This document shows, piece by piece, positions 22,044 through 58,133 of a stretch of 64,000 nucleotides of DNA (positions within the stretch are counted from its first letter, which is position 1; each line of letters opens with the position of its first letter). The notes under the pieces were generated by a model. It did not search any database and was not told where the DNA came from. It saw nothing but the letters and a program-made list of their open reading frames with translations. The stretch lies in the NCBI GenBank assembly GCA_950097015.1, contig CATNEN010000029.1:6386001-6450000 (forward strand), written 5' to 3'. The position numbers were made by a program, and so were the translations under genes. The DNA comes from Macrostomum hystrix. Its lineage: Eukaryota > Animalia > Platyhelminthes.

Positions 22044-25000
22044 TTAGCCACTGGTCTGCTCAACATTAGCCGTGGCTCCCGGCATTGTGAAGGTGTTCAT
22101 GACATTCGTGATATCATCAACCTTGGCGGGTCCGTGCTGAGCCAACAGAATCATCTGCAATTTAATCGTATCAAAAATTGGTGTTATTGGTAGTTAAACA
22201 AAAAACTATCGTAAATGCCGTGCATTTTTATTAATAAAGAAAGTTTCTTTCGACGGGCTGTCTCGCACTGGATTATAATTTCGAAGAAAAGTCGACTAGC
22301 GAGCCAACGAGGACGCATTCTACTTAATCTGAATGTCGGAATGTCTGTCTCTAAATTATATTTACCCGATTAATGGACTGCTGCAGTGTTATTTTTTGTG
22401 CTTCTATTGCGCGTGCAACCTCAAGCACCCACCCCACCGTTGCTGTCTTTGTTTATTCCGACCGGTTGTTCTGTTGTTGTTGTTTATTCCGGCCGGTTGT
22501 TCTGCTTGTTGTCGTTTATTCCGGCCGGCTGTTCTGCTTGTTGTCGTTTATTCCGGCCGGCTGTTCTGCTTGTTGTCGTTTATTCTGGCCGGTTGTTCTG
22601 CTTGTTGTCGTTTATTCCGGCCGGCTGTTCTGCTTGTTGTCGTTTATTCCGGCCGGCTGTTCTGCTTGTTGTCGTTTATTCTGGCCGGTTGTTCTGCTTG
22701 TTGTTGTTTATTCCGGCCGGTTGTTCTGTTGTTGGTGTTTATTCCGGCCGGTTGTTCTGCTTGTTGTTGTTTATTCCGGCCGGTTGTTCTGCTTGTTGTT
22801 GTTTATTCCGGCCGGTTGTTCTGTTGTTGTCGTTTATTCCGGCCGGTTGTTCTGCTTGTTGTTGTTTATTCCGGCCGGTTGTTCTACAGTTGTTGTTTAT
22901 TCCGGCCGGTTGTTCTGCTTGTTGTTGTTTATTCCGGCCGGTTGTTCTGCTTGTTGTTGTTTATTCCGGCCGGTTGTTCTGCCGTTCTTGTTCATTCCCA
23001 CCCCCACTGTCGGACAGGGGGTCGACTATCTTTCTCTCTCCCTTGATAACCATGAACGATTGTGAAGGCATAAGCTAACCATGTGTGCACCCGTGCTGAA
23101 GAGCAGCTGACAAGAATATGTAAATGTGAGCTAACAGGTTCACGCTTTACAAGTTCTAACTACTACTCGTCTAAGTCTCATGAACCTATCATTCACACCA
23201 AATATTCCGGTCATATAAACACGAACTGCTCCACGCGTCTCTCCGTGAGGGGTCACAAATGAATGAACTCAGTGACGTTGGTTTACGATTTGCTTTCGCT
23301 CGGCAACTCATAACACCAATGTGTGAGATTGTAATTAATAGATCTAGCCGAGGTACAATATGAATGGTTACTATTTAATACCTAAAAATCGCTTCGATTG
23401 GTAGTGTTGGGTGTTGGAAGAGCTAGCTAGTAAAATGTGTCAGCAAATGTATCACTGAATAAGAAGAGCGCGATACCTTGCTGCCGAACACGAGCAGCAG
23501 GGTGGTGGTGGAGCAGACGACGATGCAGACGACCACCAGCACGAAGCGCAGCGTGACCTGGCTGTTGGGCAGCACGAAACTGAGCGAGACTCCGATCGCG
23601 GCCATGATGAGCGTGTTGTACACACAGATGCCAATCTGCTTGCTGTCGTTCAGCGCCTCCAGCTGGACCTTGCGCGTCTCCCAGGCGAAGAAGATCCCGA
23701 AGATTAGAATAAAGCCTGTGTCGTGAGGAGCGGAATAGAATGTTCTAACAGACATGTCCTTGTCAGTGAAAACTTGGTCAATATGCGTTATTGGGGCACC
23801 TAGTGTAAGTGCTGAACAGGAAAACTATATTGCTTTCTGTGCTTTGTGATGGCCGTTCGCTGATAGTCGTGAAAGAAACGACTTATTGTTTTTTAAAAAA
23901 ATGTTATAAATTTCGGTCGGCGAAGACACTCCGGAAAATGTTCACAAAACGCCAGAACGTTTCTCTGAATAAAAAAATACTACAGATTATTGTGTTCATT
24001 TTTCTGATGGTTCCAAAGCACTTGAATATCAAAGAATGTTTCAGGTAAACCTTTGATTCCCAGCAAGATTCCGTTCCACATGGCTGACATGGTCGATTGA
24101 CAGATCTCAAGACGCGGCTTGCTGATGGTGCCAAGCATTGGGTTCTCCTAAAATAATGCGTGGTTCAGTGCTATAAAGTTAAGGCAAGCTACTCGCTGAG
24201 ATTAAACTGGGCTAGGATAGAATAGAGCTGGTATGTTACCGCACCTCAATGGGAAACATGATGAGCTGAAGCTGTATAGGATCTAAGACGGACCACAGGA
24301 TCAGAACCAAAGCGTCCAGTAGCAACAGCAGGCCTACCACAGTCAGCAGATGCCAGTCTTTGATGGCCTGCAATAGGGGGGCGAGTGGGTCAGCGGCTAG
24401 CGTTGCTGCCTCGCACTCCAATGGACGCTAGTTCGATTCTCCCTTCAAGTCACGATTAATTTCGGGACTTGTTGGAGGTTTTGGACAGTAGCGACCGGCG
24501 GAGGTGCACTTCGTGCAATCAAAGCTTGAAATAAAAGCTTCGCTCCTACCTTTCTGTGTGCCTGTTCTGCGTTGTGTGAGTTGTGTGCGTTGGCGCTGGG
24601 GCGTGAGGCCTTGCGGGGTGGTGGCTGGGGGGGGTGTACATCGCCGCGCGCTTTCTGGACTTTCGTCAGCGCGATTGGATGGTGACACTCATCACCCGGC
24701 CCCTCCCCTGAGGACTTATTTCATACCCCGGCTTGGTCTGCTCTGTGCGTGTGGGGCTGGGGTGGGGGCACTGCTGCCTATTCTGGGTGCCTCCTGCCCT
24801 CCCCGGCTGGTCTGTGCTGCTGTGTGTGGTGCCTGCTCAGGGGAGGCGGCGCGATGGGCGCAAAGCGCCTAGGTTCGCAGGTCTGGGGGCGTGCCGCTCC
24901 GTCGCTTGTGCGACAAGTGCCCCGGGCCCCCCTGCAAAAAGATAGATGGCCTGCAATGATTTTCGATTTCTAAAGGGGTAATAGAGTTTGATACGCTAAA

Positions 25001-28000
25001 ATATTTCAGATTACAAATCTGCCATAAAACAATAGGGGTTGCTGAACCCTTGCGAATAGTTAAAGAACCAGAAAAAAGGTTTGTTTTTAACTTGACCCTA
25101 GCCGACAAACGCGTCATAATACGAGCTACTATCTGAATCGCAAAACTATCCAAACCATACTTGAAACTTATGTGATGCACTCGCATACGGCACTTAATTT
25201 ATTACGCATTTTCTTACTTCAATCTACAAAAACTTATTGACTCAGCTCACCACCCGCTTGAGCCGCTTGTTGGTGAAGATGACGTGAACCCGCCAGGTCT
25301 TCGCGAACATGGCCCCGAATGCGCACGAGTATCCAGCAGCGAGGCAGCAGGTCTGCGTCCAGCACAGAGACACTCCAGTGTAGGTGCCTCCGTTCAGAGC
25401 CATCGCGATGCAGCTGCAGTATCCGAGCACGCAGCCGAGAGCGATCACGAGGTTCACGTTCGGAGAGCTCAGTTTGATCAGCTTCAGGTTTCGGTACTTC
25501 AGGTTGACGCACACCGACACGACGGCGAGTCCGATTCCCACGCCAGACAGGACGAGACAGACGGTGATGGCCGGCTGGCTGACTGTGACTCGCTCATTCA
25601 GCACCACCGGAGAGTCGATTGGAGGCTTCTCACCTGCGAACTGCAGAGACCGCTGCCACACCGTGATGTTTGTGGCAGGGTCGAAGTTCGCCACTGGGAC
25701 GACGAGGTTATCTGTCGATAAGCGAGTTAGGTCAGAAATTGCCACTTTGGCTGCTCAAAGCAACAGCAGGAGGACAGCTCAAAGGCTGCACGTGCTCTTA
25801 CCTCGCATTTGAAATACAACGACCTGCCCGATTCGGTCTCCGTTGTTGTCAAACTGGACCGGGCCCTGGAGTAGTTTGAAAGTTGACAGCCACGCGTCAT
25901 ACTTTGATGTAAGCTTATACATCTTAAGAGCTTAGATGTATTGTCAAGCCATCAACATTCATGGGTAAGGTTGAAGCTTTTTGTCGACCGAATAAACAAA
26001 TGCTCAGAAGGCGGCTATAACCGAAAGGCAGCTAAGTCTCGTGTCTCGAATAAGCAAACTTAATTTTACTCAGGTTAATATTTTGAAGAAGTTTCTCGAA
26101 TTCTTTAAAAGCCATGCTTACGCCTCGTGTCAAATTTTATTGCCTGAAGCGGGCACCATTGAGCAGGGGCACTCAACGCATTATCAGCTTAGCTTGACTA
26201 CCGAAGGCATAGTTAAATTGCCATGACAATCCCTTTTTAATCGGTTGCTGCCCATCAGACTCGAATTTGAAGGCTTATTCCAATTTTAAGCTCAAGCAGC
26301 GTGTAAAAGCATTCTGGCTAAAATCATGGATTTAGAGCTATACAAGTCGTTTATCACCTCAAGGCCGTTGAAATTCTGATTGCGAATATTCTGCAGTAGA
26401 CTCGTCTTGAAGGAGCTGTTGCCGAGATCCATGCTGGAATTGTACGGGTAAAGCTTAAGCGTGTCATTGATGGCCAGGGCAACCGTTGTGAGTGTGTCAA
26501 ACATCCGTGCAGCCGAGTTGTTGGTGCTCGAGCCCCAGTCTCCGTAGACAGCCCTGTACGCTCTGTGTAAGTCGTCCATAGTCTGAAAAGGCGACATCAA
26601 TATCCCATGGATTTATATCCATTAATTATATAAATATACGAGTATAATATATATACAGGAGGGTTGTGGCACTGGAACATCATTTTGTGGCACTAAAATG
26701 GTAAATGGCAATTTGTCGTAAATGGCACGACAAGCCCCCGACCTTCCCTGCGAGGCTGCGCCTTAAATAAATGTGGCCTCGCCACGGAATCGAGCTTAGG
26801 GATCTAGGCAAACGCGTTAACCGCTCTGCCACTGACCCTCCATGACCAAACTGAGTTAGGTGGAATTTCTATATTCCTTCGTTTCTTTCTAGCCTGTTTA
26901 AGTGTTGTACGCTCTCACTGTGCTCTCACCAATCCAGTCTTGCTTGGTGGAGGTTTGTAGTTGGGATCTGCCATGGCTGAATCGAACAGGATGGCATTCT
27001 GCACGGCGGTCTTCCTCATCTCCACCGAGCAGTCTCTGATGGGCGCTGCGGCTGGTAGGCCGTGCCATCCGCTGAAGATCCATTGGTACTTCGGTCCGTA
27101 TAATCCGTATTCGTAAATCTGGGGCGATAGTCAAAAAGATTTTTTTTCAGGAATATGAAAACTCTAAGCTGTCAGCGATTCCGCACAACTGTCGCAGGTT
27201 CTCACCAAGCATTCCAAAGGTTCAGCCTCCAATGACGAGTAGCGAAAGGCCACAACAATCCTCACGTCGTCTGCCTGGATGAAAGAACGCAGTCATAGTG
27301 TATTCTCAGTTACGTTTACTGCTATTTAAGTAGTGTTGCGGGCTGGTCTGCAGGATAAAGCTCTGGTCTTTCAGAATAGAGCTTTTAGACAAGCAAATTT
27401 AATTTAGTGGCTATCTGAGCTAAATATCCTTTCAGGGTGCATTTAATGCAAGAAAGGTTATGATGGCTCGTTAAGACTTCCAAAAAAAACGAGGTACATT
27501 ATTTTGTGACCATAAATTACGTATAAGATAAAGCTTTATAATGCGCATTCTATGGTCAGAATGTCATAGAAATTAAATTTAGGTTAATTAAGGCTTACTG
27601 CGGCCAGTAAAGCCACATGTACAGCTTTTGCGTTGTAATTTATTCTGTCCGTGGACTAGGGAGGTCGCCACACCCACCAGGATTTCCACCCAGCTGATGA
27701 TAGTACTTATTTAACCACTGGGTGAACTGAATAATAGCAGAATTAAAATACGTATCTTGTGGACACAACTTTCTTTCCCTTGGGCTTAGATTCGAACTCA
27801 GGACCTATCGGTCAGAAGTCGGGAGCACTGGGCTTGAAGCTCCCCTTTCAGTTAGTTGTAAGTTAATATCAAACATCCAAGCTAACCTTTAAGCGCTGGA
27901 TAATGTCACGGGTGCCACTCGTAAAGAGAGCCTTGTAGATAACTGTTATATTCCTTGTGGCAATTAGGGCTTCAAACTTGACGCCCACCTGAAGTTAAAA

Positions 28001-28840
28001 GTATTTTTTTATGAAAGAAGAAGCTTTTCTATAGAGTTTCGATAAAGATTATGCAGAAATGACGAACCGGATAAATCTGGTCGGCTTCCGTGATCAGCAG
28101 ACCAATCTTGCGCCAGTTGTGCTTCAACAGAATCTGCACAATCTCCTCGTTGTAGAGCGCGTGTGTCATCAGCAGCCGGCTGTAGGTTGTGTACTGGGTC
28201 TTGTCGGACAGCAGAGGAGAAGCGTTTGCATAGGACAGCTGAGAAAAATATAATAATTTTATTCTCTACCAATTTATCTTTAGGCTAGCGAATAAGCTCA
28301 ACTCAAGTCAATCAAAGACATTTTGTTCTTTTGGATTCTCTCCTTCGGATTCTGTTTGAAAGTTTGTTCACGACTCACCATGGGCACGTAGTACAGCTTG
28401 CAAACGTCGGCCACCACCTGAGATTGCTGTGAGAATGTGATGCCGAGAATAACTGCTTTATTGGGCTCCTTGAAGTAGCCATCGATGAATGCCTTAGTGG
28501 CCGTCCCTGTGTCTTCCTGAAAGGTTATGGAAATAGTTGGCAATGGCCTCGATAAAATAGTAACAATTTAGCATCAAATGTCGGCGTCAACGAATGCCCT
28601 TACATCCAGAGCGCATTGGTAGTAAATGCTGAGCTTGAATCCTGGAAACATGCCAGTCAGGTTGTTGATGACCGGCAGGAAGGCTCTCAACGAGAGCTCC
28701 TGAAATCTTCGAGCGCCGGTGGCGGGTACAACAGTGCAGATGTTGAGCAGAGCAATTTCGGTTCGATTGTCCTGAGCGCTGCACAGAGCAGGTAGGCAAG
28801 CCACTGCACAGCAGATGAGCAGCCAACGCCAAGAATGCAT
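22044..28840 (-). CDS. GABA-B-receptor-like class C GPCR, copy 1; 13 exons: 28604-28840, 28379-28516, 28068-28238, 27887-27988, 27206-27274, 26930-27118, 26358-26582, 25802-25865, 25251-25711, 24245-24367, 24051-24147, 23477-23715, 22044-22154 (2226 nt, 741 aa)
   Basis: Signal peptide; Venus-flytrap motifs (LSYANASPLLSDK, DVRIVV, YGPKYQWIFSGW, GPVQFD..GDR); 7TM motifs typical of GABA-B (LIKLSSPNVN, FGAMFAKTWRVH, IKDWHL, KGFILIFGIFFAWETRKV, LNDSKQIG). All introns are GT-AG and in phase. The C-tail is short. Confidence 0.92.
22450..22985. repeat. Minisatellite, 32/29-bp unit (gtttattccggccggttgttctgcttgttgtc), in the last intron of receptor copy 1
   Basis: Directly visible. Each unit holds the palindrome CCGGCCGG. 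Confidence 0.95.
24375..24944 (+). mobile_element. tRNA-derived SINE, family C (570 bp), with 13-bp TSD gatggcctgcaat
   Basis: A box TGGGTCAGCGG, B box AGTTCGATTCT, A-rich 3' end. Direct repeats at 24362-24374 and 24945-24957. Homologous to 29345-29883. Confidence 0.8.
26730..26841 (-). mobile_element. SINE family A, head fragment
   Basis: The reverse complement reads GGAGGGTCAGTGGCAGAGCGGTTAACGCGTTTGCC..GCTCGATTCCGTGGCGAGGCCACATT. Confidence 0.75.
27600..27840 (-). mobile_element. Degraded SINE family B (CORE-type) copy
   Basis: Retains gtccgtggactagg..gccacacccacc..ctgggtgaactgaa..ggacacaa..ttcgaac. Confidence 0.6.
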
Positions 28841-31015: not shown

Positions 31016-31949
31016 GTAAAAATTAATTCTTTGTCGCAGTGAGATACTTTGACAGCGACTTTGTTCGCATCTGGCCTTTGCCCAATTTTTTATAAACTTG
31101 AACGATTTTTTCTAATTGTTTTTTGTTGTTACAAACAGAAACAGGTACTTAAGTGTAAAAATGGAAGGAACAATTATGCTAATGAGCTTTTGCTATTAGC
31201 TTCAAGACAAGATACAATCCGAATTTTTTTAATTGGTACTAATTAAGTACTCTTCTTAATAGCAAAAGTGAAGTTGAATTGGGGAATGCGTCATTTTTCA
31301 GCTCAATATTGCGAATTAAACGGAACTCACGAATAACAGCTTCTGTAGGTTTTTGTGCAGTGTACTGCCGCGAACTACTGCTGGAATCGCATGACAGCAT
31401 ACGAGTATATTGCAAACTTATAATAAAATTCAACGCCTTATATACGAGCGTACTATCGAAGCGATTAACTTTTAACAAAATGGAATTAACCGTTGTTGGA
31501 TGATGATTCAATTCAATTGTCATTTACGAGGACTCTAAACCTTGCGATGGAAAATACGAAACCATCAGTCTATAAAGTGCTACTAAAACTTTCAGACTCG
31601 AAGTTTCAGTACATTTTTCAGACGCAAAGTTTGAAAGTTTGTGACTGTGTTTCTGAACGCACGACAACAAATTACAGTTATTTCGCGAAATCCGTTTGGT
31701 TTCGGCTCGAGACACAAGTTCGACCCATGTTTTTAGAATGAGACCTGAAGATGAAAATTCAGGCACCGGTTTGCTCCGGGTGAACAGACGCACCGACCAT
31801 GTTCAATGTGCTCGTGGCGTTTTTAATGTTAGCTGGCCCGTGCTGAGCTAGTAGGATCATCTGCGAGTGGTGGTTACCGATGCATATTCGAATAGGCCAA
31901 TAACGTTATTAAAAAACTATAATAATAATTTACAAAAATTTATTACACC

Positions 31950-32605
31950 TGCCCTAATTGGGCCATTTGTGCAGCCGAAAGAACTGCCACAGTTATTGCA
32001 CGGCGTATCTGAAAGTGTATCTTAAATTTCTGCGTACGGCTTTTCAGTCTATGGACTGGGGAGACGCCACTCGCACCCTCAATTACCGTAGCTAATAATT
32101 TCATAATATTATTACATCATTTGGTGACAGCAGACCCGCAGCCAGCGAGGAGGCAATTCTTCCCATTTCGCTGACTCCTGAGCACACAAGCACACAGACA
32201 CCGTACACAGGCACACGCTCACACAGGTGTGTACATCTGCCCTGACTTTCTCATCATCAGGCAGTATACACTTCACTGTGCCTTGGAGGTTGGCCCTCAA
32301 GGGCGTAAATTGCACGACAAGATACTTGGATACTTGGAGAGAAGCCCACAAGCCTTCTCTCCGCGCCCCAAATAAATTTGCCCTCGCCGCGAAATCGAAC
32401 TTAGGGACCGTGGTGCGAGAAGCAAACGCGTTAACCTCTCTGCTACCGATCCCCATTTACCCATTTAACAGCAGGGTAAACTGAAGCGATTCAGAGTTAA
32501 GTCTCTTACTAAAGTACACAGATTATTTCCGTGGAGTCGGGAATCGAACCCCCGACCTTCAAGTCGTGAGTCGGATGCTTTAACCGCTAGGCTACAACCC
32601 CCTCA
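31950..32605 (-). mobile_element. SINE family B (CORE-type) interrupted by a family A copy (about 32110-32453, minus)
   Basis: The family B head and CORE lie at 32455-32605 and its 3' part at 31950-32095, with a full family A element between them. Confidence 0.75.
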
Positions 32606-33281
32606 ATTATAATGAAACTTCGAATCGCCATAAATACCTTGCTGCCGAACACGAGCAGCAGGGTGGTGGTGGAGCAGACGACGATGCAGACGACCACCAG
32701 CACGAAGCGCAGCGTGACCTGGCTGTTGGGCAGCACGAAGCTGAGCGAGACTCCGATCGCGGCCATGATGAGCGTGTTGTACACACAGATGCCAATCTGC
32801 TTGCTGTCGTTCAGCGCCTCCAGCTGGACCTTGCGCGTCTCCCAGGCGAAGAAGATACCGAAGATTAAAAGCAGGCCTTTTAAAAAATACCCGAAAGCAT
32901 TTCATTTTACAAAGCGAATTCGTCGAAGGGAATTCCTGCATTCTCACTCGTGATTTTGTAAGTAGCGCAATTTTTTTAGCTTGTTGGAACTAAATTTTCG
33001 TATCACCATTTATATTTACATCAGAAAATTGTCCGAGCTGCGCTTGTGACACCGGCCGTAATGTTGAGAGACATTTTATTGCTAGTTCTAAAGCCACCTC
33101 GTTTTTCATCATCGTGCCGATAAATATTCATTCCAACACACAAAACGTTTTAAATCGACAATTAGTCAATCTAATAAAATGTATCATATTTTTTTAATTA
33201 ACGAAATATGCTCGTCAGTCCAGCGAATTATTGTTTTAACTTTTCTCGTTTCGCTCTCTAAGCCTTTACATTTAGACGCAT

Positions 33282-35624
33282 TGATGTGGAGTGTACTTCG
33301 GAATCGAGTGGGGTTGTGAGCCAGCCTAATTTTTTCCAATTTTTAGCAAGTCAATAATCGCGACCCACATAGCAGCTGGCCGCAGAACACTATCATTAAT
33401 CTTAGGGCCAGACATTGGGCGGAGGTGAATTAAGTAGCCGCCGATTCCCTTTGTCTCGGATCTGTCTAGTCCCCTGTAGGAGTGACTGATCGCGGAAATA
33501 GCAATACTGTATGGACTAGTTTAGGTTATAATTCCCCTCCAAACCGCGATCAGATTGTCGGGATCACTCATGCGTTTAGAGTGAGCTTTAATTCTTCATG
33601 TCCCTTTTCTTTACTGTAACCCGAGCCGAAGCTCGATTATGACCTTTCCCCCTTTAGATACATGTAACGACACTATAGGCAGGTCGGCGCCTGCGCTTCC
33701 CATATCCCGGCGGGATCACAATCATTGGCCGACTGCCGGCAGACGCTCCTAGTGGGGCATCTGGCGATTCTCGCCGCCGCTTCAGTGGGCAATTGGGGTG
33801 GCATTATGCCGACCCGATTCCTCGCTGACAGGCCGGCGAGCATGTGGGTTATTTTGATGAATGCGAGGTTGGCGGAGCTGCAGGACTATTTAAGAGAGCG
33901 CGCTGCGCTGCCCCTAGGGGACCACCCTTCGGACCTACCTTCCCCCGAACCTACTTTTCCGCCCCTACAACCTTTTTCCCTTGTCCGGTCCCGGAACTCG
34001 GTCCGTGGACTCTCCCCCTTCTAGGCTAGCACCTAGTCCCTGAGCCTAAGGCTCCAGATCATAGCAGCAGGCAACTACCTGCTAGTGCCCTTAAGCGCAA
34101 GCCACCTCTTTAGGTGCGCTCCAAATTGAGCCTTGAGCTCCCTGCAGTCTGGCCCCTTGCCAACTGTACTTAGAAATTCCTCACCTTTTCTCCTGTTCAT
34201 TTGCATTCCCCCGCGAGATCGACGGCCTGCAGCCTGTCAACCAGCGTATTCAGATAAGTAACCCGCGCAGCGGACTGTTATTGCTATCCCTAAGGGATTT
34301 ACTACTTAGCTAGTGGGCAATAAGGGCGAGGGCAGGGATTTGTTTTTAGCCTAATAAACCATTTATTATTTGACTGCCACTTTTAATAACTTAGGCCAAT
34401 TTTATAACAACTAAACCTTTCCTTATCATGCTATTCTCTTCTGTTTATTTTATCGCTAGGCAGCCCTCGGTCATGAGTGGCTAACTCATTAGGGGGTGGG
34501 CTCTGGCGATGCCTAGCTGAAAGCTGCGGCAGGAGGACAACTGTGAGCGCGCATGAGAGTAATATGGAGCTAGGGATTTGCGAGCTAAATGCGGGATGTA
34601 GCGTGTGCACTTCTGCCTACGAGGTGGGGGATTCCTTGGCCGGCTTTCCTCACTCTCTCGGCGGGTTCCAGTGTATGCGTCAAGTTCCTTTGCCAATTTG
34701 AATTCTCCCTCTTTTCCCCGCCTTTCGCAACCGCGGCCATGGAAGCGAGAGGCGTGATCTAATAATTTCCTGCTTGCATAATCACTCAGCCAGTGTTCAG
34801 CTTAATCTCTCCTGCCTCTGTTCTCCTCAACTCACACAGAATCGGCTTGCTAGTTATCTAATGAATAGGCTGCAGTCTAATGTACGGAATGTGTCTAATG
34901 TCTCATGAGTAGGATTCTGGCTATGGATTTCTCATTCGGGTTCGGAGTACCACCTTTCTAGACCACTGTAGCGCAGTTTCAGGAATCCCCTTGTGAGGCG
35001 TGACTCGATCCATTCTGGGGTTCTCACCCTAGTCTAAAACGGAAGTTACAGAATGCTCTATTTTTCGGCTTGTCTAAGATCTGTGTGACAAACTGGGAGC
35101 TGCGAGCTCCGGGGACCCAAGTTCCCAAATGTCTGCGGTGGCCACGTAGGCGCATTGGGTGGTGGCGCTACCTTCGATCATTATCCGCTTTGCCGATAGC
35201 CTTTCCGCATTTCTAAGACAAGAGCCTAGGCCGAGTCGACCACTGCTACCAAAGTTAGGAGTCAGTTACGAACATGCTACTGATGACAGTAGGCTATCTA
35301 GCCCTGTCCTATTCGCTTGCGGGTAGTCCGACATCTATTTAGACTTTTAGCCGGTTTCGAGCACTGCTTGGGGTGGGCACGGCAGTCATGCCTGTGGCCC
35401 ATGGGTTGGGTGGGACTGGCCAGCCTGAGGCCAATAGGACCACTCACTTGCATCCTTTGTACCGCCTCATCTCTCCCTTCATCTCTCCCTTCATCCCTCC
35501 CTTCGTCATCCCTCTCTGCGACAACTCGCGGCAGCAGCGATCGACCTCCGACTCTATCGTCGTTTTCCACACTCCTATCTTTCATGAGGGCGGTCATCGG
35601 CTAGCAAAGACCCGCACTATTTCA
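33282..35624 (+). repeat. 5' LTR (2343 bp)
   Basis: Identical to the 3' LTR wherever spot-checked. The ORF track gives identical peptides at +7855. Confidence 0.95.
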
Positions 35625-35625
35625 A

Positions 35626-35645
35626 TGGTGGCATCGAGGTGGGAT
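35626..35645 (+). promoter_or_regulatory. Primer-binding site, tRNA-Leu-like
   Basis: TGGTGGCATCGAGGTGGGAT lies 1 nt after the LTR. It is close to the complement of a eukaryotic tRNA-Leu 3' end (..ATCCCACCGCTGCCACCA), but not a perfect match. Confidence 0.75.
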
Positions 35646-36929
35646 CTAGAAAGGGCGCGAAACGAACTTGATTTTCAATTATTAGTTTAGCGCCGCAGAT
35701 TTCTGTGGTAGCTTGCCGAAAGGGCTCCTTCTGGATTTCATTTTCCGTATGCCGAAATCTTATCTCAGTTCTAGTGACTGTCAATTAATTTCCGAACAGT
35801 TGCAATTTGGTTTCAATTTAATTTAGGCTTTTGTTAGAGTTTCCAAAATTCTGATTAGTGACTTTCTACTATGAGTAGGCTGTGTGAGCGGACTTCATGC
35901 TAGAGTGTCTTCGGGTTAGTGGCTGCTGCAGGAGTCGGGGACTGTCTGTGGGGTTTTCCCGCGTGATTGATCTGGGAGGGGCCATTCTTAACGAGGGACC
36001 GGGCAACGCCGTTCGGCCTTCTAACCGAGCGAGGGGAGCCCCCGGCAATGCAGCCGGGAATCGATGACTCGCCGAGCACCGGGGATTGGTTCTCTTGGGC
36101 AGCTTGCGGGCCTGCTTACGTGTACCTGATTTTGAAAGTGTCACATAACTTTGACCAAGTCTGACTTTGGTGGGGAACAGTTAGGGAGGTGGGACTTCTG
36201 AGGGAGGTCTAGCGACCCCCGTGCCCGCCTCTCGAAACTGCCTACTTCAAGTATGGGCTAGAATTCGGTCGGCACGTTTTTCTAAGAGATTCTTTGAGGG
36301 GTTTTCTAAATGGGGTTGCCAGGCTTTAGCCATGGACTCCTATCCGAGCGAGATCCCAGGTATATCCCCCCTGGGCTTCCCAGTCTCGTTAATCGCGAGG
36401 GGGGCCCCCGGCAATGCAGCCGGGAACCGATGACTCCCCGAACGAGTCGGGGATTATCCCTTCTCTGAGTATCTTATTGAGGCGTGTACTTTCCAAGGTA
36501 GGGTGATAGGCTGTTGCAGGCGCAAGCTTGCAGTAGTACTGACCCCGCCGTACCTATAGTGCAACAGTCCGCTATAGGGTTGCAGAACGAGTGCTAAGTT
36601 AAAACCTAGACTTCTATGTCCCAAACTTAAGTGCGCGCAAACAGTTGTCAGTAGCCAAGGCTGGAAGCAAAGCTAGCCAGGGCCCTGGGCCCTTTTCTCT
36701 CTCACTGATCTTTGATCATTTTTGCAGCAGGGTTGCTCTCTAGGAGTAGGGAACTCGCCGCATCATTAACCAGGGCTGGATTTGACAGCTCAGGCTCGTT
36801 TCTTTTCCCCCCTGCACGATCTCCAGTCGTGATCTGTGTTTTCCTTTTCCTCCCCTCCCCCATTGTTGCATTAGCGACAGACCCCCCTCTTTTTCATTCG
36901 CAAAATCCTCATTCCTCTTTTGGCCGAAA

Positions 36930-37988: not shown

Positions 37989-38419
37989 ATGCACTCGGCC
38001 GAGTCCCCACCCGAGTGCGAACCCGCCCAAATCGCTCTGAGCAGCTTAGTGAGGTGTGGGTCGCCTTGGAAGTGGGAGGGACACCCCTAGACCTCCTCAT
38101 CGACACAGGGTCTATGGTAAATGTGCTCCCGGACTCGTTGTCATCAATCTTTCAACACTACCCATTCGAACCCCCGCAATTTTCTCTTTTTGCTTATAAT
38201 GGAACACCCATTGTTGCACAGGCGCAGGTCAGGGTCAAATTACAGGTTGGCACCGAAGCGCTGGACACCGTGTTCTTAGTGGTTGAGGGCGACTGCTCTC
38301 CCCTGCTCGGTGCCTCCTGGTTGGCTCATCATCATGCCATCGTTGACTTTGACTCGCGCCACTTAATCATATATCGTCAATTTCTCCCCTTTTCACTCAG
38401 GCGGAAGGCTAAATTTTAA
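37877..38419 (+). CDS. Retroviral-type aspartic protease, in the -1 frame relative to gag
   Basis: LDLLIDTGSMVNVLP (catalytic DTG) and the C-terminal PLLGASWL motif (LLG.DWL-like). The ORF stops at 38419. Confidence 0.88.
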   Translation, partial: WERGRQLEAVPRPRDPARSSTVGAAAAAASDLREVRVNALGRVPTRVRTRPNRSEQLSEVWVALEVGGTPLDLLIDTGSMVNVLPDSLSSIFQHYPFEPPQFSLFAYNGTPIVAQAQVRVKLQVGTEALDTVFLVVEGDCSPLLGASWLAHHHAIVDFDSRHLIIYRQFLPFSLRRKAKF

Positions 38420-46400: not shown

Positions 46401-46825
46401 GGAAATTTTGCCGTCCTGTGATTGGCGCCACGGTGCAGATGTGGAGCAATGTGACTTCAGTTCGGTTGTCAGTTGTCAGACGGGCAACAGGAGCAGCAGC
46501 CAGCTCCGAAAGATTCGCATGGCAAAAGTGAAATCGAACCGAAGAAAGTAACTGTGGTACTCTATTTAACAGTTTGTGCCAGGAGATAGATAAAGGCTAG
46601 CGCCTATTGGACTGGGTTTCCAAGCCAGTAATTTCACAAGACATTAAAAATGTGAAAAATGCATAAAAATTAAGTCCGGAGATGTTCCAACGCAACTTAT
46701 ATATTTTAAAAGCAATTGAGGCAGACCAAATACTTGCTTGCTCTATCTATGTCATCTCAATAACATACGAGCGTACGAGTGGTGGCCGAGTATATTGCAA
46801 GTGCTTTTGTAACATCCCTATTTCT

Positions 46826-50300: not shown

Positions 50301-53300
50301 TCAACAATTGGACTGCTCGATGCTGGCAGACGTACCGGGCGTGGTGAATGTGTTCATAGCATTGGTGAAATCGTCAACCTTTCTTGGACCGTGCTGAACG
50401 AGCATGATCATCTAAAACAGATTAAAAGTTTGGTGTTTGAATAAAAATTAATTACACCTGCCACCAATTGGGTCAGATTTGCAGCCGACAGCACAGCCGC
50501 AGCTAATGCGTGGCGCATCTGAAGGCTGCGTACAGCTGTTCAGTCCATGGACTGGGGGATGCCACACCCACCTTCAATTATCCCAGCTGATGCTGGTACC
50601 CATTTAAAAGCTGGTTGAACTGAAGCCATGCAGAGTCAAGTGTCTTGCTAAAGGACACAAATTGTTTAAGTGGAGTCGGGAATCGAACCCCCGACCTTCA
50701 AGTCGTGAGTCCGACGCCCTAACTACTAGGCTACAACCTCTTGGTGTTATACAAATATTATATTGGTAAATACAATATGTGATAAAATTCCTACAATAGA
50801 CTTTATAAAATACACTAATTCACAATTGCGATAGAAAAACACCAGCTTCCAAAAACCTTGCTGCCGAACACGAGCAGCAGGGTGGTGGTGGAGCAGACGA
50901 CGATGCAGACGACCACCAGCACGAAGCGCAGCGTGACCTGGCTGTTGGGCAACACGAAGCTGAGCGAGACTCCGATCGCGGCCATGATGAGCGTGTTGTA
51001 CACACAGATGCCAATCTGCTTGCTGTCGTTCAGCGCCTCCAGCTGGACCTTGCGCGTCTCCCAGGCGAAGAAGATCCCGAAGATTAGAAGCAAGCCTGCG
51101 GCATGGGGAGTAAAAATGCATATTTTATTCCCAGAATGTCGGTGGCAGAGCGGTTAACGCGTTTGCCTCTCGCGACAATGTCCATAAGTTCGATTCCGCC
51201 GCGAGGCCACATTCATTTGGGACGCAGTCGCGGAGAGAAGGCTTGGGGGCTTGTAGTGCAATTTGCGCCCTTGAGGGCCAACCTCCACGACAAAGTGAAA
51301 GTGTACATTGCCTGACCTGTGTGAACGTGTACCTGCGTACGGTATCTGTGTGCGTGTGTGCTCAGGAGTCAGCGGAATGCCTCCTCGCTGGCTGCGGGTC
51401 TAGTTTCACCAAATGGTGTGCTATTTACCGCAGCCCTCCTGCAATTATTGTTATTAAATTTTTTATTCCAAATGTTTTGCACCAGAACCATTCCATAGCT
51501 AAGTGGTTTCCTTCTACATTTGTCTTCCAGGATAGACTAGGAATCCACAAAACTCGTACTAGCACGTAATTTGCCTTCAAGGCACGCAGCTAGCCAAACC
51601 TTATGTTCTGTTCCCATCTCGCCGATTTGGCTTTATTGGAAGTGTCTGCAAGCAGACTTACCTTTGATTCCTAAAAGAACTCCATTCCACACAGCGGCAA
51701 GTCCGGACTGACAGATCTCCAGGCGAGGCTTCTTAATCACCCCGAGAGCGGGATCCTCCTGAAACAGGAAGATTTGGACTTCTTCCAATAAAAATCTGTT
51801 CCATTTCAGTGTTTTAGCAGAATTGAAAGCCAGTAATGGCATGGCGCACCTCTATTGGAAAAAAGAAAACCACCAGACTCAAGGGATCCATGATGAACCA
51901 CAGGATAAAAACTACGGCATCCACGAGTAGGAGTAGACCAACGACCGAGAGCAGGTGCCAGTCCTTGATGGCCTGCAAAACGGAAATTGTAAGACAGTGT
52001 CTTCAGACAGCGAACTTCGAAACCAAAACCAAGTGAACGGAAAAACTCTTTCCCTAGTCGTAAAAATTAGATTTCAAGTAATTACAGATACTCAGCTCAC
52101 CACCCGCTTGAGCCGCTTGTTGGTGAAGATGACGTGAACCCGCCAGGTCTTCGCGAACATGGCCCCGAATGCGCACGAGTATCCAGCAGCGAGGCAGCAG
52201 GTCTGCGTCCAGCACAGAGACACTCCAGTGTAGGTGCCTCCGTTCAGAGCCATCGCGATGCAGCTGCAGTATCCGAGCACGCAGCCGAGAGCGATCACGA
52301 GGTTCACGTTCGGAGAGCTCAGTTTGATCAGCTTCAGGTTTCGGTACTTCAGGTTGACGCACACCGACACGACGGCGAGTCCGATTCCCACGGCAGACAG
52401 GACGAGACAGACGGTGATGGCCGGCTGGCTGACTGTGACTCGCTCGTTCAGCACCACCGGAGAGTCGATTGGAGGCTTCTCACCTGCGAACTGCAGAGTC
52501 CGCTGCCACACCGTGATGTTTGTGGCAGTGTCGAAGTTCGCCACTGGGACGCCCACATTGTCTGTGCATGAGTGAAAGATTTGATAAGAGTATAAAGCGA
52601 AGAAAAACTCGAATGCTGCATATCCTCTTACCTCGGATTTGAAAGACAACGACTTGCCCGATTCGGTCTCCGTTATTGTCGAACTCGACTGGGCCCTGAA
52701 ACCAATAGATCGAAACTTGAAAAAAACTTTAGTCAGTAGTTAATAGCACTTTACTCAATAAAGAAATCAAAATATTTTTAGAAACCATGTAAATAGGAGC
52801 ATCAGTTTTAATACTTTCGTCAGTAACTAGTTCGTTGGGGTGCAACATAGTTTTGTTAATCCTTTTGAGATTACTGTCTTCAACTTAGTTTCGAAGCTGG
52901 CCATCAAGTGTCTTATAACGAATTTTAGTCTGCCTAAAGATATTTAGAGAAGAATGTTTAAAGCGGTTAAATAAATGTAAACCATGCCCTTGCTAAATGC
53001 GCTTGAGGCCCGATCAACCATTTAGGCCCTCAGAGTATTAGCGGCTAAGCCTAAAAGCATTTGAATGACGCATTTGCCTAGCTGTCACTTTCTGTCACTT
53101 TGAGTTTTTAAGCCGAGCAGCATCTGTAAATTGAGTTGATTAGCTGAGAACGAAATTCTCCTTTTTAATTCCCGTGCTAATCAAGATTATTGCCTGAATT
53201 CCATTAAAACGCTGCATCCGAATGTTTTGCAGAAGACTTGTCTTGAAGGAAGTGTTGCCCAGCTCGATGTTGGTGCTGTACGGGTACAGTTTAAGCGTCT

Positions 53301-56300
53301 CGTTGATGGCCAGGGCGGCAGTGGTCAGGGTGTCAAATACGCGGGCAGCGTAGCCGCTGTTGCGAGCTGACCAGTCGCTGTAGATTGCCGAGTAAGCAGT
53401 TTGCAAGTCGTCCATTGTCTGTATGTCACAGATTAGCAAATGTATATTTGCTATTTTTAGTTTTTTTAGCGTACACGAATCACATGCGTAAATTGGAAGT
53501 GAGTATGGGGCCGGACCCCCTTATCGGGTAACCAACGCCCCAAATCCTTGAGGGCACTCCCCAAATCCTAGGTGGCACTCCCAAAATCCAAGGTGGCACT
53601 CCCCAAATCCTAGGTGGCACTCCCCAAATCATCGATGACACTCCCAAATCCTAGGTGGCACTCCCCAAATCCTAGGTGGCACTCCCCAAATCCTAGGTGG
53701 CACTCCACAAACCCTCGGTGGCACTCCACAAACCCTCAGTGGCACACCCCAAACACTAGGTGGCACTCCCCAAACCCTAGGTGGCACTCCCAAAATCCTC
53801 GGTGGCACTCCCCGAACCCTAGGTGGCACTTCCCAAATCCTCAGTAGTGGTACTGCCCAAATCCTCAGTAGTGGCACTCCCAAATTCTCAGTAGTGGCAC
53901 TCCCAAAATCCTCAGTAGTGGCACTCCCCAGATCCTAGGTGGCACTCCCAAAATCCTAGGTGGCACTCCCAAAATCCTAGGTGGCACTCCCCAAATCCTA
54001 GGTGGCACTCCCAAAATCCTAGGTGGCAATCCCCGAATCCTCGATGGCACTCCCCGAATCCTCGATGGCACTCCCTGAATCATCGATGGCACTCCCAAAT
54101 CCTAGGTGGCACTCCCAAAATCCCAGGTGGCACTCCCCGAATCCTAGGTGGCACTCCCCAAATCCTAGGTGGCACTCCCCAAATCCTAGAAGGCAACCCC
54201 AAACGCCCTCCCAAAAAATCGTGGCTTTGCTTCTAATATGAATATTTTCAACTGGCAAATACTCACCAATCCAGTCTTGCTTGGTGGAGGTTTGTAGTTT
54301 GGATCTGCCATGGCTGAATCGAACAGGATGGCATTCTGCACGGCGGTCTTTCTCATCTCCACCGAGCAGTCTCTGATGGGCGCTGTGGCTGGTAGGCCGT
54401 GCCATCCGCTGAAGATCCATTGGTACTTCGGTCCGTAAAGTCCATATTTATAGATCTGGTGATGAAATTTATCAATTGGCTTCGACAGTTCTGTACTTTT
54501 GAGTCAAAAGTTTTAGCGAGCTGTTTGGAGAAAAGAGAAATACAAAGTAGCCACCACAGTACGATTAAACTATTCGATTAAACAAAGTTGCTATTCTTTC
54601 ATTGTACAAATTTATTTTAAAACTAACAGTAGAACTACCAAGGGGGCTTTCCCCTTGACAATTTTTGTGCTGCACCCGAACAGAGCAACTCAAGCACACG
54701 AAACTCGAGAACACCGGTAGACTTTTTGATGCGCATCCTGAAACAATTGAATCAAGTTGCCAGGCCTTCAGACCGTCGAGATATTCAATGGTTCTGACTG
54801 AATGTCCGATTTTTCCCATAAGCTATTATTTTTCTTATTATTAATAAGTCTACACAGCTAATTAAATCTTCGGGACTAACTGCTTCATCTGTGCGATGCG
54901 GCTGGGTTCCCGAAGAAGAATGTGCGTTAAACACTTTGGTTAGGTTGTCCGCGATGTCAGCGATTGGGGCTTGAGATCTGTTAAGTCGCTTGCTGGGGAA
55001 CAGTAACTCTTCTACTCTTCTATGACCGGACCAGAATCCCTTTGAGGTTCCAGAAGCCGCCATTTTCTGAATGCAGTCATTTATGTCTATCTGCTTAAGT
55101 TTCTTAAGCTGTTGTTTGTATTTTTTGCTAGCCCTGATATTCTGATGCCAGCGCACTGTCAGTTGGTCTACGTCTTTTTTCCTGGCCACGAACTTCAATG
55201 ATTTGCTCAAGTTTCTTAGTGTCTCATCTCGATTTGTCCCGAACTTAGTCGGAATGATTGTCTTTGCGCAGCTTTCTGCCGCTGAGTCTCTAAGCAGGTT
55301 GGTCAAGCTCGAGAACAAATTTTCCAGGGATTCTCCATCGCGTGCGTCAACAGATAGCAACTTTCTATTTATTTCTTCGCTTTGTTTGTTATTCAATGCC
55401 TCAATGTAACTTCCCTGCTTCTCAGTGTCCCATCTTAGAGGCATTGGGAAGGATTCATGTTTTTCCTGGTTTGCGTGTTCTGGTTGGACATGATCAGGAA
55501 AAATCAGAGTGACTGTTAGCGGGCAATGTCTGGACAGAAAGCTTTGAGGATGAATAAAGAAGTATTTTATAATATCCATTTTATCCATGGATGCAATAGC
55601 GTAGTCTTCGGCTTAGTATGCTACTAAACGTGTAATTTCCCATAATGTCACCCTGAGTCATTCCGTTCAGAATCGTGCCCTTGGTCTCGGAGCACATTTC
55701 CATCAGTCTTAGTCCATGCTTGCTTTTCTCAGAGTCCTGATTCTGTCTGGGAAACTTATCCCTAGTGCTGGACTGTAATGTGCCAGTTCGTGCAATATTA
55801 TTTTTTATGAGGTAAACCATGCCGTTTGATAATCTACCTTTGTTGACTCCCCTTGCCTTGATTCAATCTGCCCCAAAGCAGGTGAAATCTATCAGCGTGT
55901 TTGAGTCTAGCTGCTCCTGTTTGGCGTGGGTCTCACAGAGGAAAACTGTCTCTATTCCTAAAATATTCGTGGAAACTTGGTGACTCCATTTTGCATTCTC
56001 CACTGAGCATCAGTCCATCTATGTTCCAACTGGTGATGATCGACTCTGACTTATTATAAGTAACCTTCTTTTCGCAGCTGCCCTGTGCTTCAGTGACTAT
56101 TCGAGAGTTAAAATTTAGCGTAGAAATTGACATAGAAAGTTCTCAGAGCCAGTCATGACGGGTTCAAAACCTGTTGCACGGAGTGGGATTCGACGGTATC
56201 AAAAATAGAAAGTTATTAGCTCGTAGGCAAAGGAGTTAGAGCACCCGAGCTGAGCAGCTAAAGCGCTAGTGAATTTCATACACCCCTATACACGAATTAG

Positions 56301-58133
56301 CACTGCGCCTGAGTGCGGCCTTGCCAGGCCTTCAAAACTTATCAGCATGTCACCTGAATGTGCCTGCATCATCTCCGTCTTTGGTGATCATCAACCTTTA
56401 ACTAGACGGACTGCTAGACCTTCAAGGGCTACAGCAGGTGGAACTATGGACACGCTGACGCGAATTTCTCTAATTTCACTGATAAAGTCTAAATATAAGG
56501 CGCAGATTAACTACAGGAAACCCTCGACTAGTCTGTCAACCAATCAGTCACCACCTAACGCTGTTAGTATTCAGGCGCCGCCAAAAAAATGGTATAAAAA
56601 CGGGCGGCAAAATGGCTTTGTATTCCTACTGTTAATCACCTAAAATTAGTATAATTAGATGGATGTTAATGCAGTGAGTTGCTTACCAAGCATTCCATCG
56701 GTTCGGCCTCTAGGGAGGAGTATCGAAAGGCGACTATTATTCGAACGTCGTCCGCCTGAAGTTGAAATATATTTTGATCACGCTTCTGAAGTAACATGGA
56801 TGAGAGCATATCAATTGGTATCATTAGGGTCAAAGTGCTACCTTTAAGCGCTGAAGAATGTCGCTCAAGTCACTTGTGAAAAGCGCCTTGTAAATAACTG
56901 AAATGTTCCTACTGGCAATCAGGCTTTCGAATTTGACTCCGACCTAAAGTAGTTTTTTTAGTTTGCTCGCGAATTAATGGGGTTATGAGAATCTAAAAAT
57001 TCTAAGTTTTTACGCGCAAGAGCTCATTAGTACTGTCGTTTAAATCAAGGGAGCATTTGCTTTTCAACTTTAAACTTCTATTCTGTTGTTCCCTTAAAAT
57101 TCGAGAGTTGATCGCAAATACGAGCGTAAAATTGCTCTGACAGGCTTTTATTGAGGCCATTTTATTATTTACTCACACATATTAAACAAAGAATGAATTA
57201 ATTTGGATGTCCTGGAATATCCAAGGAACTGAAATCAGTAAACTCACTGAGAGTGCTATATTAGCCAGCGGTATTTAATTGGTAATGGTAACTATAACCA
57301 AAATAAGTGTCAAATCTACAAAGGCCACACAAACCGGATAGATCTGGTCGGCTTCCGTGATCAGCAGACCAATCTTGCGCCAGTTTTGCTTCACCAGAAT
57401 CTGCACAATCGCCTCGTTGTAGAGTCCGTGTGTCATCAGCAGTCGGCTGTAGGTTGTGTACTGGGTCTTGTCGGACAGCAGAGGAGAAGCGTTTGCATAG
57501 GACAGCTGAAAAAGTGCACGCAATTGAGAATAATTTCTGCATGCTCTACGGTGAACGGAGATTGCTACATTTGTACTGGGGTCGTGTTTTAAGCATTCGG
57601 GTTGAACTGCGAGATTTTATTCTTGAATCAATAGTAAATGAAATGCTGACAACTCACCATTGGAACGTAGTATAATTTACAAACGTCGGCTACTACTTGA
57701 GACTGCTGTGAGAAGGACATGCCAATGATCATGGCCTTATTCGGCTCGCTGAAATACCCATCGATAAACGCTTTCGATGCGGTGCCAGTGTCTTGCTGAA
57801 AGTCATTGCGCGGCAGGTTAACTTCTGAATTAAAAGGGACTTTTTACACTGAATTTTACTATAGTTTAGGCCTTCTGGTGGCGTTTATGTACTCACATCA
57901 ATGGCGCACTGATGGTGGATGTTGATTTTGAATCCCGGGAACATGTCTGTCAGGTTGTTGACCAGCGGTAGGAAGGCTCTGACCATGAACTCTGGGTAAT
58001 TGTGCTGACCAGTGACGGGCCTGACTGTGCAAATGTGCAGCAGGGTGACCTCAGTTCGGTTGTCAGAAGCGTAGCACAGGCCCGCAAGGCTTGCGGCTGC
58101 ACTCAGGAGCAGCAGCGAGCTCCTAAAACCCAT
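50301..58133 (-). CDS. GABA-B-like class C GPCR, copy 3; 13 exons: 57897-58133, 57658-57795, 57335-57505, 56842-56943, 56687-56755, 54267-54455, 53194-53418, 52632-52695, 52101-52561, 51850-51972, 51662-51758, 50857-51095, 50301-50411 (741 aa)
   Basis: Exon lengths and phases are the same as copy 1, with no stops. The model needs a GC donor after exon 7 (CAG|GCAATA). Confidence 0.88.
50450..50740 (-). mobile_element. SINE family B (CORE-type), the most complete copy
   Basis: The reverse strand reads GGTTGTAGCCTAGTAGTTAGGGCGTCGGACTCACGACTTGAAGGTCGGGGGTTCGATTCCC, then TGTGTCCTTTAGCAAGACACTTGACTCTGCATGGCTTCAGTTCAACCAGCTTTTAAATGGG, then the 3' body. Confidence 0.82.
51139..51450 (+). mobile_element. 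SINE family A copy
   Basis: GTCGGTGGCAGAGCGGTTAACGCGTTTGCC..AAGTTCGATTCC head and family body. Confidence 0.8.
53530..54200. repeat. Minisatellite, 21-bp unit (ggcactccccaaatcctaggt), in intron 6 of receptor copy 3
   Basis: Directly visible, degenerate. Confidence 0.92.
54600..56110 (-). mobile_element. Decayed non-LTR retrotransposon (LINE) ORF2 fragment: APE endonuclease plus linker
   Basis: Broken ORFs with SWNIDGL, GLRLMEMC..ILNG..GDIMGNYTFSS and SRHCPL (SDH-like), followed by an EN-RT linker-like helical segment. Several stops and frameshifts. Confidence 0.7.

Follow-up and report, generated by a model that had tools for sequence, protein, structure and literature searches.

The window, a 64,000-nt stretch of a Macrostomum hystrix contig, contains three tandem copies of a GABA-B receptor 2-like gene of the class C GPCR type, all on the minus strand; copies 1 and 3 are intact and copy 2 is a pseudogene (Table 1). 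In both intact copies the coding sequence is open throughout (2226 nt, i.e., 741 codons) and is divided into 13 exons of equal lengths (E1-E13: 237, 138, 171, 102, 69, 189, 225, 64, 461, 123, 97, 239, and 111 nt). All their splice borders are GT-AG, except for one GC donor in copy 3. The exon sizes and coordinates of the initial annotation agree with the gene models that we rebuilt, its two limits (23477 and 57505) being the 3' end of E12 in copy 1 and the 5' end of E3 in copy 3, respectively. We searched the whole assembly (220 Mb in 42 contigs) for relatives of these genes. Near-identical E9 and E12 are confined to the three copies in the 220-Mb genome, and the next paralogs are 73%-80% identical.

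Table 1. Coordinates of the receptor genes, of the homogenized exons and of the retrotransposon, numbered along the window
Feature	Position	Strand	Remarks
Copy 1 gene	22044..28840	-	13 exons, 2226-nt CDS, AG/GT borders, zero in-frame stops
Copy 1 E1-E5	E1 28840-28604, E2 28516-28379, E3 28238-28068, E4 27988-27887, E5 27274-27206	-	
Copy 1 E6-E9	E6 27118-26930, E7 26582-26358, E8 25865-25802, E9 25711-25251	-	
Copy 1 E10-E13	E10 24367-24245, E11 24147-24051, E12 23715-23477, E13 22154-22044	-	
Copy 2 pseudogene	31770..46503	-	Same gene; E9 44717-44257, E12 32876-32638
Copy 2 in-frame TGA	E4 45543-45541; E11 43619-43617	-	
Copy 3 gene	50301..58133	-	Intact, 13 exons, 2226-nt CDS
Copy 3 E1-E5	E1 58133-57897, E2 57795-57658, E3 57505-57335, E4 56943-56842, E5 56755-56687	-	
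Copy 3 E6-E9	E6 54455-54267, E7 53418-53194, E8 52695-52632, E9 52561-52101	-	GC donor at E7
Copy 3 E10-E13	E10 51972-51850, E11 51758-51662, E12 51095-50857, E13 50411-50301	-	
Homogenized E3	Copy 1 28068..28238; partner copy 3 57335-57505	-	dS 0.075
Homogenized E6	Copy 1 26930..27118; partner copy 3 54267-54455	-	dS 0.16
Homogenized E9	Copy 1 25251..25711; partners copy 2 44257-44717, copy 3 52101-52561	-	dS 0.026
Homogenized E12	Copy 1 23477..23715; partners copy 2 32638-32876, copy 3 50857-51095	-	dS 0.035
E8 and first ~25 nt of intron 8	Copy 1 25802..25865; copy 3 52632-52695	-	Intermediate divergence
LTR retrotransposon	33282..43479	+	10.2 kb, in intron 11 of copy 2
LTRs of this element	33282-35624 and 41137-43479		

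The genes are assigned by their predicted 7tm_3 domain to the class C GPCRs of the GABA-B receptor type. In an exon-by-exon search with copy 1, Pfam 7tm_3 was matched by E9 (E = 1.9e-20), E12 (4.2e-15), and E10 (1.6e-3), and the best PDB matches of E9 (1.3e-26) and E12 (2e-17) were to GABA-B R2. E9 corresponds to the linker and TM1-TM3 (aligned to GABA-B R2 residues 448-589), and E12 to TM6-TM7 (residues 667-741). As single-exon queries, E3 matched the extracellular domain of GABA-B R1/R2 with E about 1e-3 and E6 matched the GABA-B extracellular domain weakly, both probably corresponding to segments of the Venus flytrap; for ANF_receptor, single-exon queries gave sub-threshold matches only, in E2 and E7 (E 0.002-0.03). 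A long C-terminal coiled-coil tail seems to be absent from the receptor, because the CDS has just 741 codons, with 36 residues encoded by E13.

Comparing copies 1 and 3, we observed a sharp difference in synonymous divergence between exons. E3, E6, E9, and E12 are 97.3% identical, with a pooled dS of 0.056, versus 71.4% identity in the remaining nine exons, where 333 of 1166 nt differ, pS is 0.69 and synonymous sites are saturated. E3 differs at 7/171 nt and E12 at 4/239. The nine differences in the 189 nt of E6 (positions 3, 6, 7, 12, 16, 18, 70, 105, and 156) include six within the first 18 nt and three in the other 171, and the nine in the 461 nt of E9 (positions 2, 5, 6, 8, 10, 33, 63, 116, and 169) include five up to position 10, the last of the nine being at 169. 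Among the other exons, dS is above 1 or saturated in eight of nine, the exception being E8 (0.46). Identity is 64%-76% in E1, E2, E4, E7, E10, E11, and E13, and E5 differs at 16/69 nt, two of these differences being nonsynonymous (21 of 23 residues are identical). At four-fold degenerate sites the difference is 2/181 for E3, E6, E9, and E12 versus 75/120 for the others (Fisher's exact test, p = 3e-36), with 0/88 in E9 and 0/41 in E12. The identical runs reach 300, 130, and 100 nt, whereas none of 10,000 permutations gave a run longer than 94 nt. The patchwork of near-identity that the initial annotation had described for exons 3, 6, 9, and 12 is thereby confirmed: we reproduced its difference counts for E3, E5, E6, E8, E9, and E12, found the seven other exons diverged as it had reported, and obtained values of dS that are far from uniform across exons (0.03-0.16 versus mostly >1). 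E8 differs at 7/64 nt, and 16 of the first 20 nt of intron 8 are identical; a blastn block pairing 25240-25868 with 52090-52698 is 91% identical. The sequence of E8 together with the start of intron 8 is probably an older conversion tract.

The pseudogene takes part in the same pattern. In addition to the two in-frame TGA codons of Table 1, copy 2 has lost the acceptor of E3, lacks E5, E8, and the 5' three quarters of E6, and carries a 4-nt frameshifting insertion close to the end of E7. Its E10 and E11 share about 75% identity with those of the other copies, and its E9 and E12 differ from copy 3 at 1/461 and 4/239 nt. Selection is thus unnecessary for homogenization, given that the E9 of a pseudogene differs from copy 3 at a single position. 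The E3 homolog of copy 2 (45766-45931) is 89%-90% identical to the others, with differences mostly in its first 36 nt, which suggests an older tract.

In each of the four exons, the tracts of the trio end 0-25 nt from splice sites, in agreement with the initial annotation, and the two intronic stretches that it had listed around E9 were found exactly as described: copies 2 and 3 have 23 consecutive intronic nt in common upstream of E9, and copies 1 and 3 have 11 in common downstream. Beyond these 23 and 11 nt the identity of the flanking introns is random, and the introns of copies 1-3 are unalignable beyond such short flanks. The 5' ends of the tracts lie 6-20 nt inside the exons, off the junction (the E6 tract begins about 19 nt in), and the 3' ends hug the donor site of each of the four exons. 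These 3' ends are tighter than a random end-point model predicts, presumably because homology is lost abruptly. Since the shared stretches include intron sequence, the template was either DNA or unspliced.

Islands at E9 and E12 are seen again in three additional paralog pairs located elsewhere in the genome. In the tandem pair C38, the second part of E9 has a dS of 0.04, and the tract extends about 65 nt into the intron, which argues that copying was DNA-templated; the first part of E9, located behind an extra intron, is diverged. In the C10/C9 pair, dS is 0.27 for E9, 0.18 for E12, and 0.44 for E3, versus values above 1 for the other exons. In the C7 pair, whose members lie 525 kb from each other in inverted orientation, alignment is limited to E12 (96%) and the 3' end of E9 (86%). 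The regular spacing of the initial annotation, in which every third exon was affected, is a coincidence rather than a rule, with other pairs showing only E9 and E12, and sometimes E3. Conversion affected the exons that combine a length of at least 171 nt with an identity between clades of at least 0.61. This two-threshold rule was formulated post hoc, and it is the only description that separated the converted exons. Identity within pairs is weakly rank-correlated with exon length alone (rho 0.06-0.34); the product of length and conservation is a weak predictor too, and identity between clades gives rho of 0.65-0.97.

We consider it very likely, on the basis of sequence comparison, that the pattern results from homology-limited interlocus gene conversion, confined to the long conserved exons of old tandem paralogs. 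The initial annotation had proposed DNA-level conversion in roughly exon-sized tracts, and this reading is well supported by the dS contrast, by the co-conversion of intronic sequence, by the pseudogene and by the other pairs. We infer a repair mechanism, a homology threshold and escape dynamics that would operate as follows. An ancient duplication would have given rise to three tandem receptor copies in the same orientation. Later, non-reciprocal copying of DNA during break repair would have overwritten E3, E6, E9, and E12 repeatedly, with E9 and E12 as the latest. Strand invasion and heteroduplex extension would require near-identical sequence; with introns that are unrelated, each tract would therefore stay trapped within a single exon. 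Exon edges would be converted less often, which would account for the clustering of differences in the first 10-20 nt. Exons that are long (at least 171 nt) and kept similar by purifying selection would stay above the homology threshold and thus convertible, and short exons, as well as the fast-evolving long exons E1 and E7, would have escaped. The process would be mechanistic, and not a selected device, given the participation of the pseudogene. Unequal crossing-over was considered and rejected, since it gives one switch point and the pattern has eight alternations.

Several other processes could produce near-identical exons. E3, E6, E9, and E12 might never have diverged, owing to a very low mutation rate or to constraint at the nucleotide level (codon bias, splicing enhancers, RNA structure), and it fits this explanation that E9 and E12 have the highest GC3 and the most conserved protein sequence, and that identity within pairs correlates with identity between clades. 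However, between family clades these four exons differ at 33%-75% of four-fold sites and are saturated, so that their synonymous sites are free to change; set against the 0/88 and 0/41 of the trio, this excludes a rate 20- to 40-fold lower, and bears out the remark of the initial annotation that purifying selection is insufficient to preserve synonymous identity. Moreover, copy 2, free of selection at the protein level, is homogenized as much as the intact copies, and identity reaches into introns both in the trio and in the C38 pair. Constraint is accordingly an extremely improbable explanation. An artifact of assembly or polishing, in which reads from paralogs were mis-mapped and the consensus overwrote similar exons, would be facilitated by the shortness of the near-identical stretches (171-461 nt) and by a region rich in repeats, with many minisatellites. 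Yet polishing is unable to lift an identity of about 70% to 98%, cross-mapping needs copies that are already alike, and private differences persist inside the tracts (position 409 in E9 of copy 2; 33, 63, 116, and 169 in E9 of copy 1). The graded ages of the exons, with dS from 0.03 to 0.5 in the trio and the three other pairs, fit evolution and not polishing, and the assembly is highly contiguous. We regard an artifact as very unlikely.

The coincidence of tracts with exons might also be explained by conversion from an RNA template, either a cDNA or a transcript, and the location of tract ends so close to splice sites, in each of the four exons of the trio, is what such a template would lead one to expect. 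Against it, intron sequence is included in the converted stretches on either side, adjacent exons are not co-converted, all 12 introns are retained, and the 5' ends lie inside exons rather than at junctions. A spliced template predicts the opposite pattern, and nothing requires an unspliced pre-mRNA; we give RNA-templated conversion almost no credence. It is similarly hard to believe that selection for identity of TM1-3 and TM6-7, plus parts of the flytrap, among subunits that pair or share G proteins is what retained conversion, even if E9 and E12 are homogenized in four independent paralog groups and GABA-B-type receptors function as dimers. E10 and E11, which encode TM4-5, rank with the most diverged exons, E3 and E6 probably encode extracellular, ligand-binding sequence, the pseudogene was converted as well, and exon length and conservation account for the affected exons without any appeal to function. 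For the same reasons, the suggestion of the initial annotation that conversion keeps signaling modules uniform finds no support.

Gene conversion between paralogs is known from several systems. It has been reported mostly for exons, with diverged introns falling under the homology threshold (PMC3966223, section 4.2), and exon-restricted interlocus conversion between tandem paralogs has been reviewed for Caenorhabditis (PMC3966223). Conversion is documented for many vertebrate families, among them globins, RH, and CEACAM (PMC7042247) and class I ADH (PMC3409193). The receptor genes resemble known cases in that old duplicates carry islands of near-identity, synonymous sites included, with sharp ends, introns acting as barriers, escaped regions and exchange with a pseudogene. 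Such an exchange between pseudogene and gene takes place in the pair CYP21A1P/CYP21A2. The trio differs from known cases in that four separate exons were converted independently, each tract lying within one exon, and the family differs in that islands have formed repeatedly, in four paralog groups, at the same two exons. Noonan and colleagues reportedly described, in 2004, regional gene conversion in clustered protocadherin genes. There, too, conversion is limited to segments of a receptor while ligand or recognition parts are diverse, although the tracts of protocadherins are contained in single large variable exons and, in the trio, half of the converted exons (E3 and E6) probably encode ligand-binding domain. 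Converted segments of protocadherins have raised GC3. In the receptor family, GC3 is highest in E9 (0.80) and E12 (0.91-0.94), but for E12 it is 0.70-0.94 across all members, including those without a close partner; since it is equally raised in the latter, a signature of GC-biased conversion could not be demonstrated. No publication on conversion in GABA-B-like receptors of flatworms turned up in our literature search. The process that the locus so clearly exemplifies is well known, and no new mechanism is revealed.

Depending on the exon chosen, the same gene pair appears either young, with a dS of 0.03, or ancient, with a dS above 1, which can mislead both dating and orthology calls. Trees or tests of positive selection in this expanded receptor family should treat E3, E6, E9, and E12 separately. 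Sequence exchange between a pseudogene and its functional neighbors is a way in which defects can be imported or segments of the pseudogene itself preserved, and the trio, along with the repeats of the pattern within the family, could contribute to estimating, across the genome, the thresholds of homology and length for conversion. A bolder reading, which we consider rather unlikely, is that conversion is unusually pervasive and strictly homology-limited in this flatworm, so that individual exons of old paralogs would be bistable, either perpetually homogenized or permanently escaped, and E9 and E12 would have been caught again in separate events in four or more paralog groups (some of them pairs on different contigs, in inverted orientation or 525 kb from each other), or else that co-assembling subunits are selected for identity of TM1-3 and TM6-7 and thereby retain the tracts. 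If conversion were indeed this pervasive and exons bistable, the genome would offer a natural setting in which to measure how little homology and how short a length suffice for conversion in the germ line of an animal.

Repeats within the window were mapped by self-BLAST. The LTR retrotransposon in intron 11 of copy 2 is outside the conversion pattern: its two LTRs, 2343 nt each and 100% identical, have TG...CA ends and are accompanied by a 4-nt target-site duplication (GCAT), which rules out an assembly duplication as the origin of this repeat. The many minisatellites of the window include one with a 21-nt unit, and the contig is free of Alu elements and has a tRNA-derived SINE.

Self-comparison and six-frame mapping of the window resolve its minus strand into one gene present in three tandem copies (copies 1 to 3). 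Searched against Pfam exon by exon, the peptides match 7tm_3 (1.9e-20 for exon 9, E9; 4.2e-15 for E12) and, weakly, ANF_receptor; the closest solved structure is GABA-B receptor subunit 2 for both E9 (1.3e-26) and E12 (2e-17). These domain and structural matches place the genes in the GABA-B group of class C GPCRs. Three-way alignments around each conserved block were used to set the splice borders in copies 1 and 3, giving 13 exons each, of equal lengths (E1 to E13: 237, 138, 171, 102, 69, 189, 225, 64, 461, 123, 97, 239 and 111 nt), which agree exactly with the exon sizes used in the initial annotation. The coding sequence of 2226 nt has no in-frame stop in either copy. All acceptors are AG and all donors GT, except for one GC donor in intron 7 of copy 3 (window 53192-53193), which the reading frame requires and which is GT in copies 1 and 2. 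E3 and, weakly, E6 correspond to the predicted extracellular Venus-flytrap domain, E9 to the linker and transmembrane segments 1-3 (TM1-3), E10 and E11 to TM4-5, and E12 to TM6-7. A 21-aa match to the E13 peptide of copy 1 (57% identity, E 2e-5) lies on the minus strand at 20616-20678, 1.4 kb downstream of the real E13 of that copy; it could be what is left of another copy that has decayed, or else serve as an alternative 3' exon.

Between copies 1 and 3, E3, E6, E9 and E12 together differ at 29 of 1060 nt. E5 differs at 16/69 nt (2 of them non-synonymous) and E8 at 7/64, and the remaining exons are 64-76% identical. All difference counts of the initial annotation were reproduced, as were the intron stretches it had reported around E9: 23 consecutive nucleotides upstream are common to copies 2 and 3, and 11 downstream to copies 1 and 3, past which the introns match no better than random sequence (25-35% ungapped identity). 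The annotation had also proposed per-exon dS as a check, and this proved strongly uneven. Phases were taken from cumulative exon length and split codons left out, so that all codon statistics are per exon. Nei-Gojobori dS is 0.075 in E3, 0.16 in E6, 0.026 in E9 and 0.035 in E12 (pooled, 0.056), versus a saturated synonymous difference of 0.685 in the other nine exons pooled; E8 is intermediate (0.46). Four-fold degenerate sites differ at 2/181 positions in the four exons versus 75/120 elsewhere (Fisher p = 3e-36). Identical runs reach 300, 130 and 100 nt, compared with a maximum of 94 nt when the 362 differences were placed randomly over the 2226 sites in 10,000 trials, and the outcome is unchanged with third positions alone.

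Copy 2 is a pseudogene. It carries in-frame TGA codons in E4 (45543-45541) and E11 (43619-43617), no longer has an E3 acceptor, lacks E5 together with the 5' three quarters of E6, which leaves just 296 nt between E4 and E7, and is frameshifted by a 4-nt insertion at the end of E7; E8 is not recognisable in it. Its E9 differs from that of copy 3 at 1 of 461 sites and its E12 at 4 of 239, and E10 and E11 share ~75% identity with those of the other copies. The perfect repeat seen at 33282-35624 and 41137-43479 corresponds to the identical LTRs of a young retrotransposon in this copy, whose largest internal ORF is 352 aa (36930-37988).

Neither selection on the nucleotide sequence nor slow mutation can explain the pattern, because 33-75% of the four-fold sites in E3, E6, E9 and E12 differ between family clades, and because the pseudogene, free of protein-level selection, is homogenised as well. 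The four exons are thus under no intrinsic constraint, and the earlier view that purifying selection alone fails to account for the synonymous identity holds. Copying from a spliced-RNA template is likewise ruled out, since the tracts hold intron sequence and skip alternate exons, and no intron has been lost. The initial annotation had further read the pattern as keeping signalling modules uniform; this does not fit, as E3 and E6 match extracellular sequence, the exons for TM4-5 rank with the most diverged ones, and homogenisation extends to the non-functional copy. Nor is the regular 3-6-9-12 spacing found in other paralog pairs; it arises by coincidence from which exons happen to be long and conserved.

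The gene family was surveyed across the 220-Mb assembly in 42 contigs. Genome-wide, E9 and E12 are near-identical only at the three window loci, the next relatives being 73-80% identical; E12 homologs occur at at least 23 loci. Four further family members that we fetched have the 13-exon structure in common, with one additional intron within E9 in the C38 genes, a tandem pair on another contig. In that pair dS is 0.04 in the large part of E9, 0.54 in E12 and >1 in all other exons; the small E9 part beyond the extra intron is diverged, and the tract extends ~65 nt beyond the donor into the intron. The split exon is a natural test, with conversion confined to the larger part and the intron acting as a barrier. 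A pair on different contigs (C10/C9) has dS of 0.27 in E9, 0.18 in E12, 0.44 in E3 and >1 in the rest. Alignment of the C7 pair is confined to E12 (96%) and the E9 3' end (86%), which suggests that conversion may act across long distances and in inverted orientation. Because identity islands occupy the same exons in four independent paralog groups of graded ages, the data argue for a recurrent biological process rather than an assembly accident. The assembly is presumed accurate, and true concerted evolution of the locus is probable.

For old duplicates, homology-dependent interlocus gene conversion predicts just such a pattern. The dS contrast, the intron-including tracts, the pseudogene and the other pairs all agree with the earlier proposal of conversion in exon-sized tracts. 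With intron similarity wholly lost, strand invasion and heteroduplex extension would start and end solely within an exon, so that tracts would be exon-sized or smaller and would halt a few nucleotides at most from the point where homology abruptly ends. Exon edges would be converted more rarely than the interior, which may explain why differences cluster near exon 5' ends, within 10-20 nt of the start of E6, E9 and E12 and within 36 nt of the start of copy 2 E3. Along E9, differences of copy 1 from copies 2 and 3 become sparser 5' to 3' (positions 2-10, 33, 63, 116 and 169, then none in 292 nt), suggesting that several conversion events may have overlapped. The affected exons are both at least 171 nt long and at least 0.61 identical in nucleotides between clades; E1 and E7, long but fast-evolving (0.52-0.54), and E2, E5, E8 and E10, conserved but short, escaped. 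This two-threshold description is post hoc, and exon length, taken by itself, is a weak correlate of within-pair identity. A review (PMC3966223, section 4.2) gives the same principle: paralog conversion is mostly reported in exons, since introns that have diverged are no longer similar enough to satisfy the homology requirement.

Interlocus conversion that leaves a mosaic, some regions having escaped, is already well documented, as in CEACAM (PMC7042247), primate ADH (PMC3409193), copepod GOT1 (PMC3728101) and Caenorhabditis paralogs (PMC3966223). Our literature search found no paper on gene conversion in this GABA-B-like receptor family. The locus is a clean further example of a known process, to which it adds a pseudogene participant and four-fold replication within one family.

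Coordinates of repeats in the window and of paralog pairs elsewhere in the genome
Feature	Position	Strand	Description
LTR retrotransposon	33282-43479	+	10.2 kb, copy 2 intron 11; identical 2343-nt LTRs, TG...CA ends, GCAT 4-nt target-site duplication
Minisatellites	286-1251; 1476-2386; 9012-10125; 21350-21686; 22439-22998; 46678-48657; 53535-54204; 58673-60467; 62387-62776		
tRNA-derived SINE	3568-3880; 12102-12450; 18538-18850; 26717-26845; 30761-31029; 32114-32456; 51138-51455		~300 nt; 66-93% mutual identity
Second dispersed repeat	13201-13475; 32458-32600; 49433-49662; 50446-50738		
C38 tandem pair	C38:9806001-9846000		Two genes 22 kb apart; extra intron splits E9 after ~26 codons
C7 pair	C7:1666447-1669672; C7:1141044-1144269		Inverted, 525 kb apart

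GC3 was considered as a sign of GC-biased conversion: it is highest in E9 and E12 in 6/6 intact genes, but E12 reaches equally high values in family members that lack a close partner. Minisatellites, with units of ~20-54 nt, are unusually dense in the window: 21-nt units form arrays between copies 2 and 3 and within intron 6 of copy 3, a 32-nt unit occurs in intron 12 of copy 1, and a 31-nt array of 98-100% identity lies directly upstream of copy 3. The SINE interspersed in the window is tRNA-derived and is not Alu, and several of its copies sit in introns of the three receptor genes.
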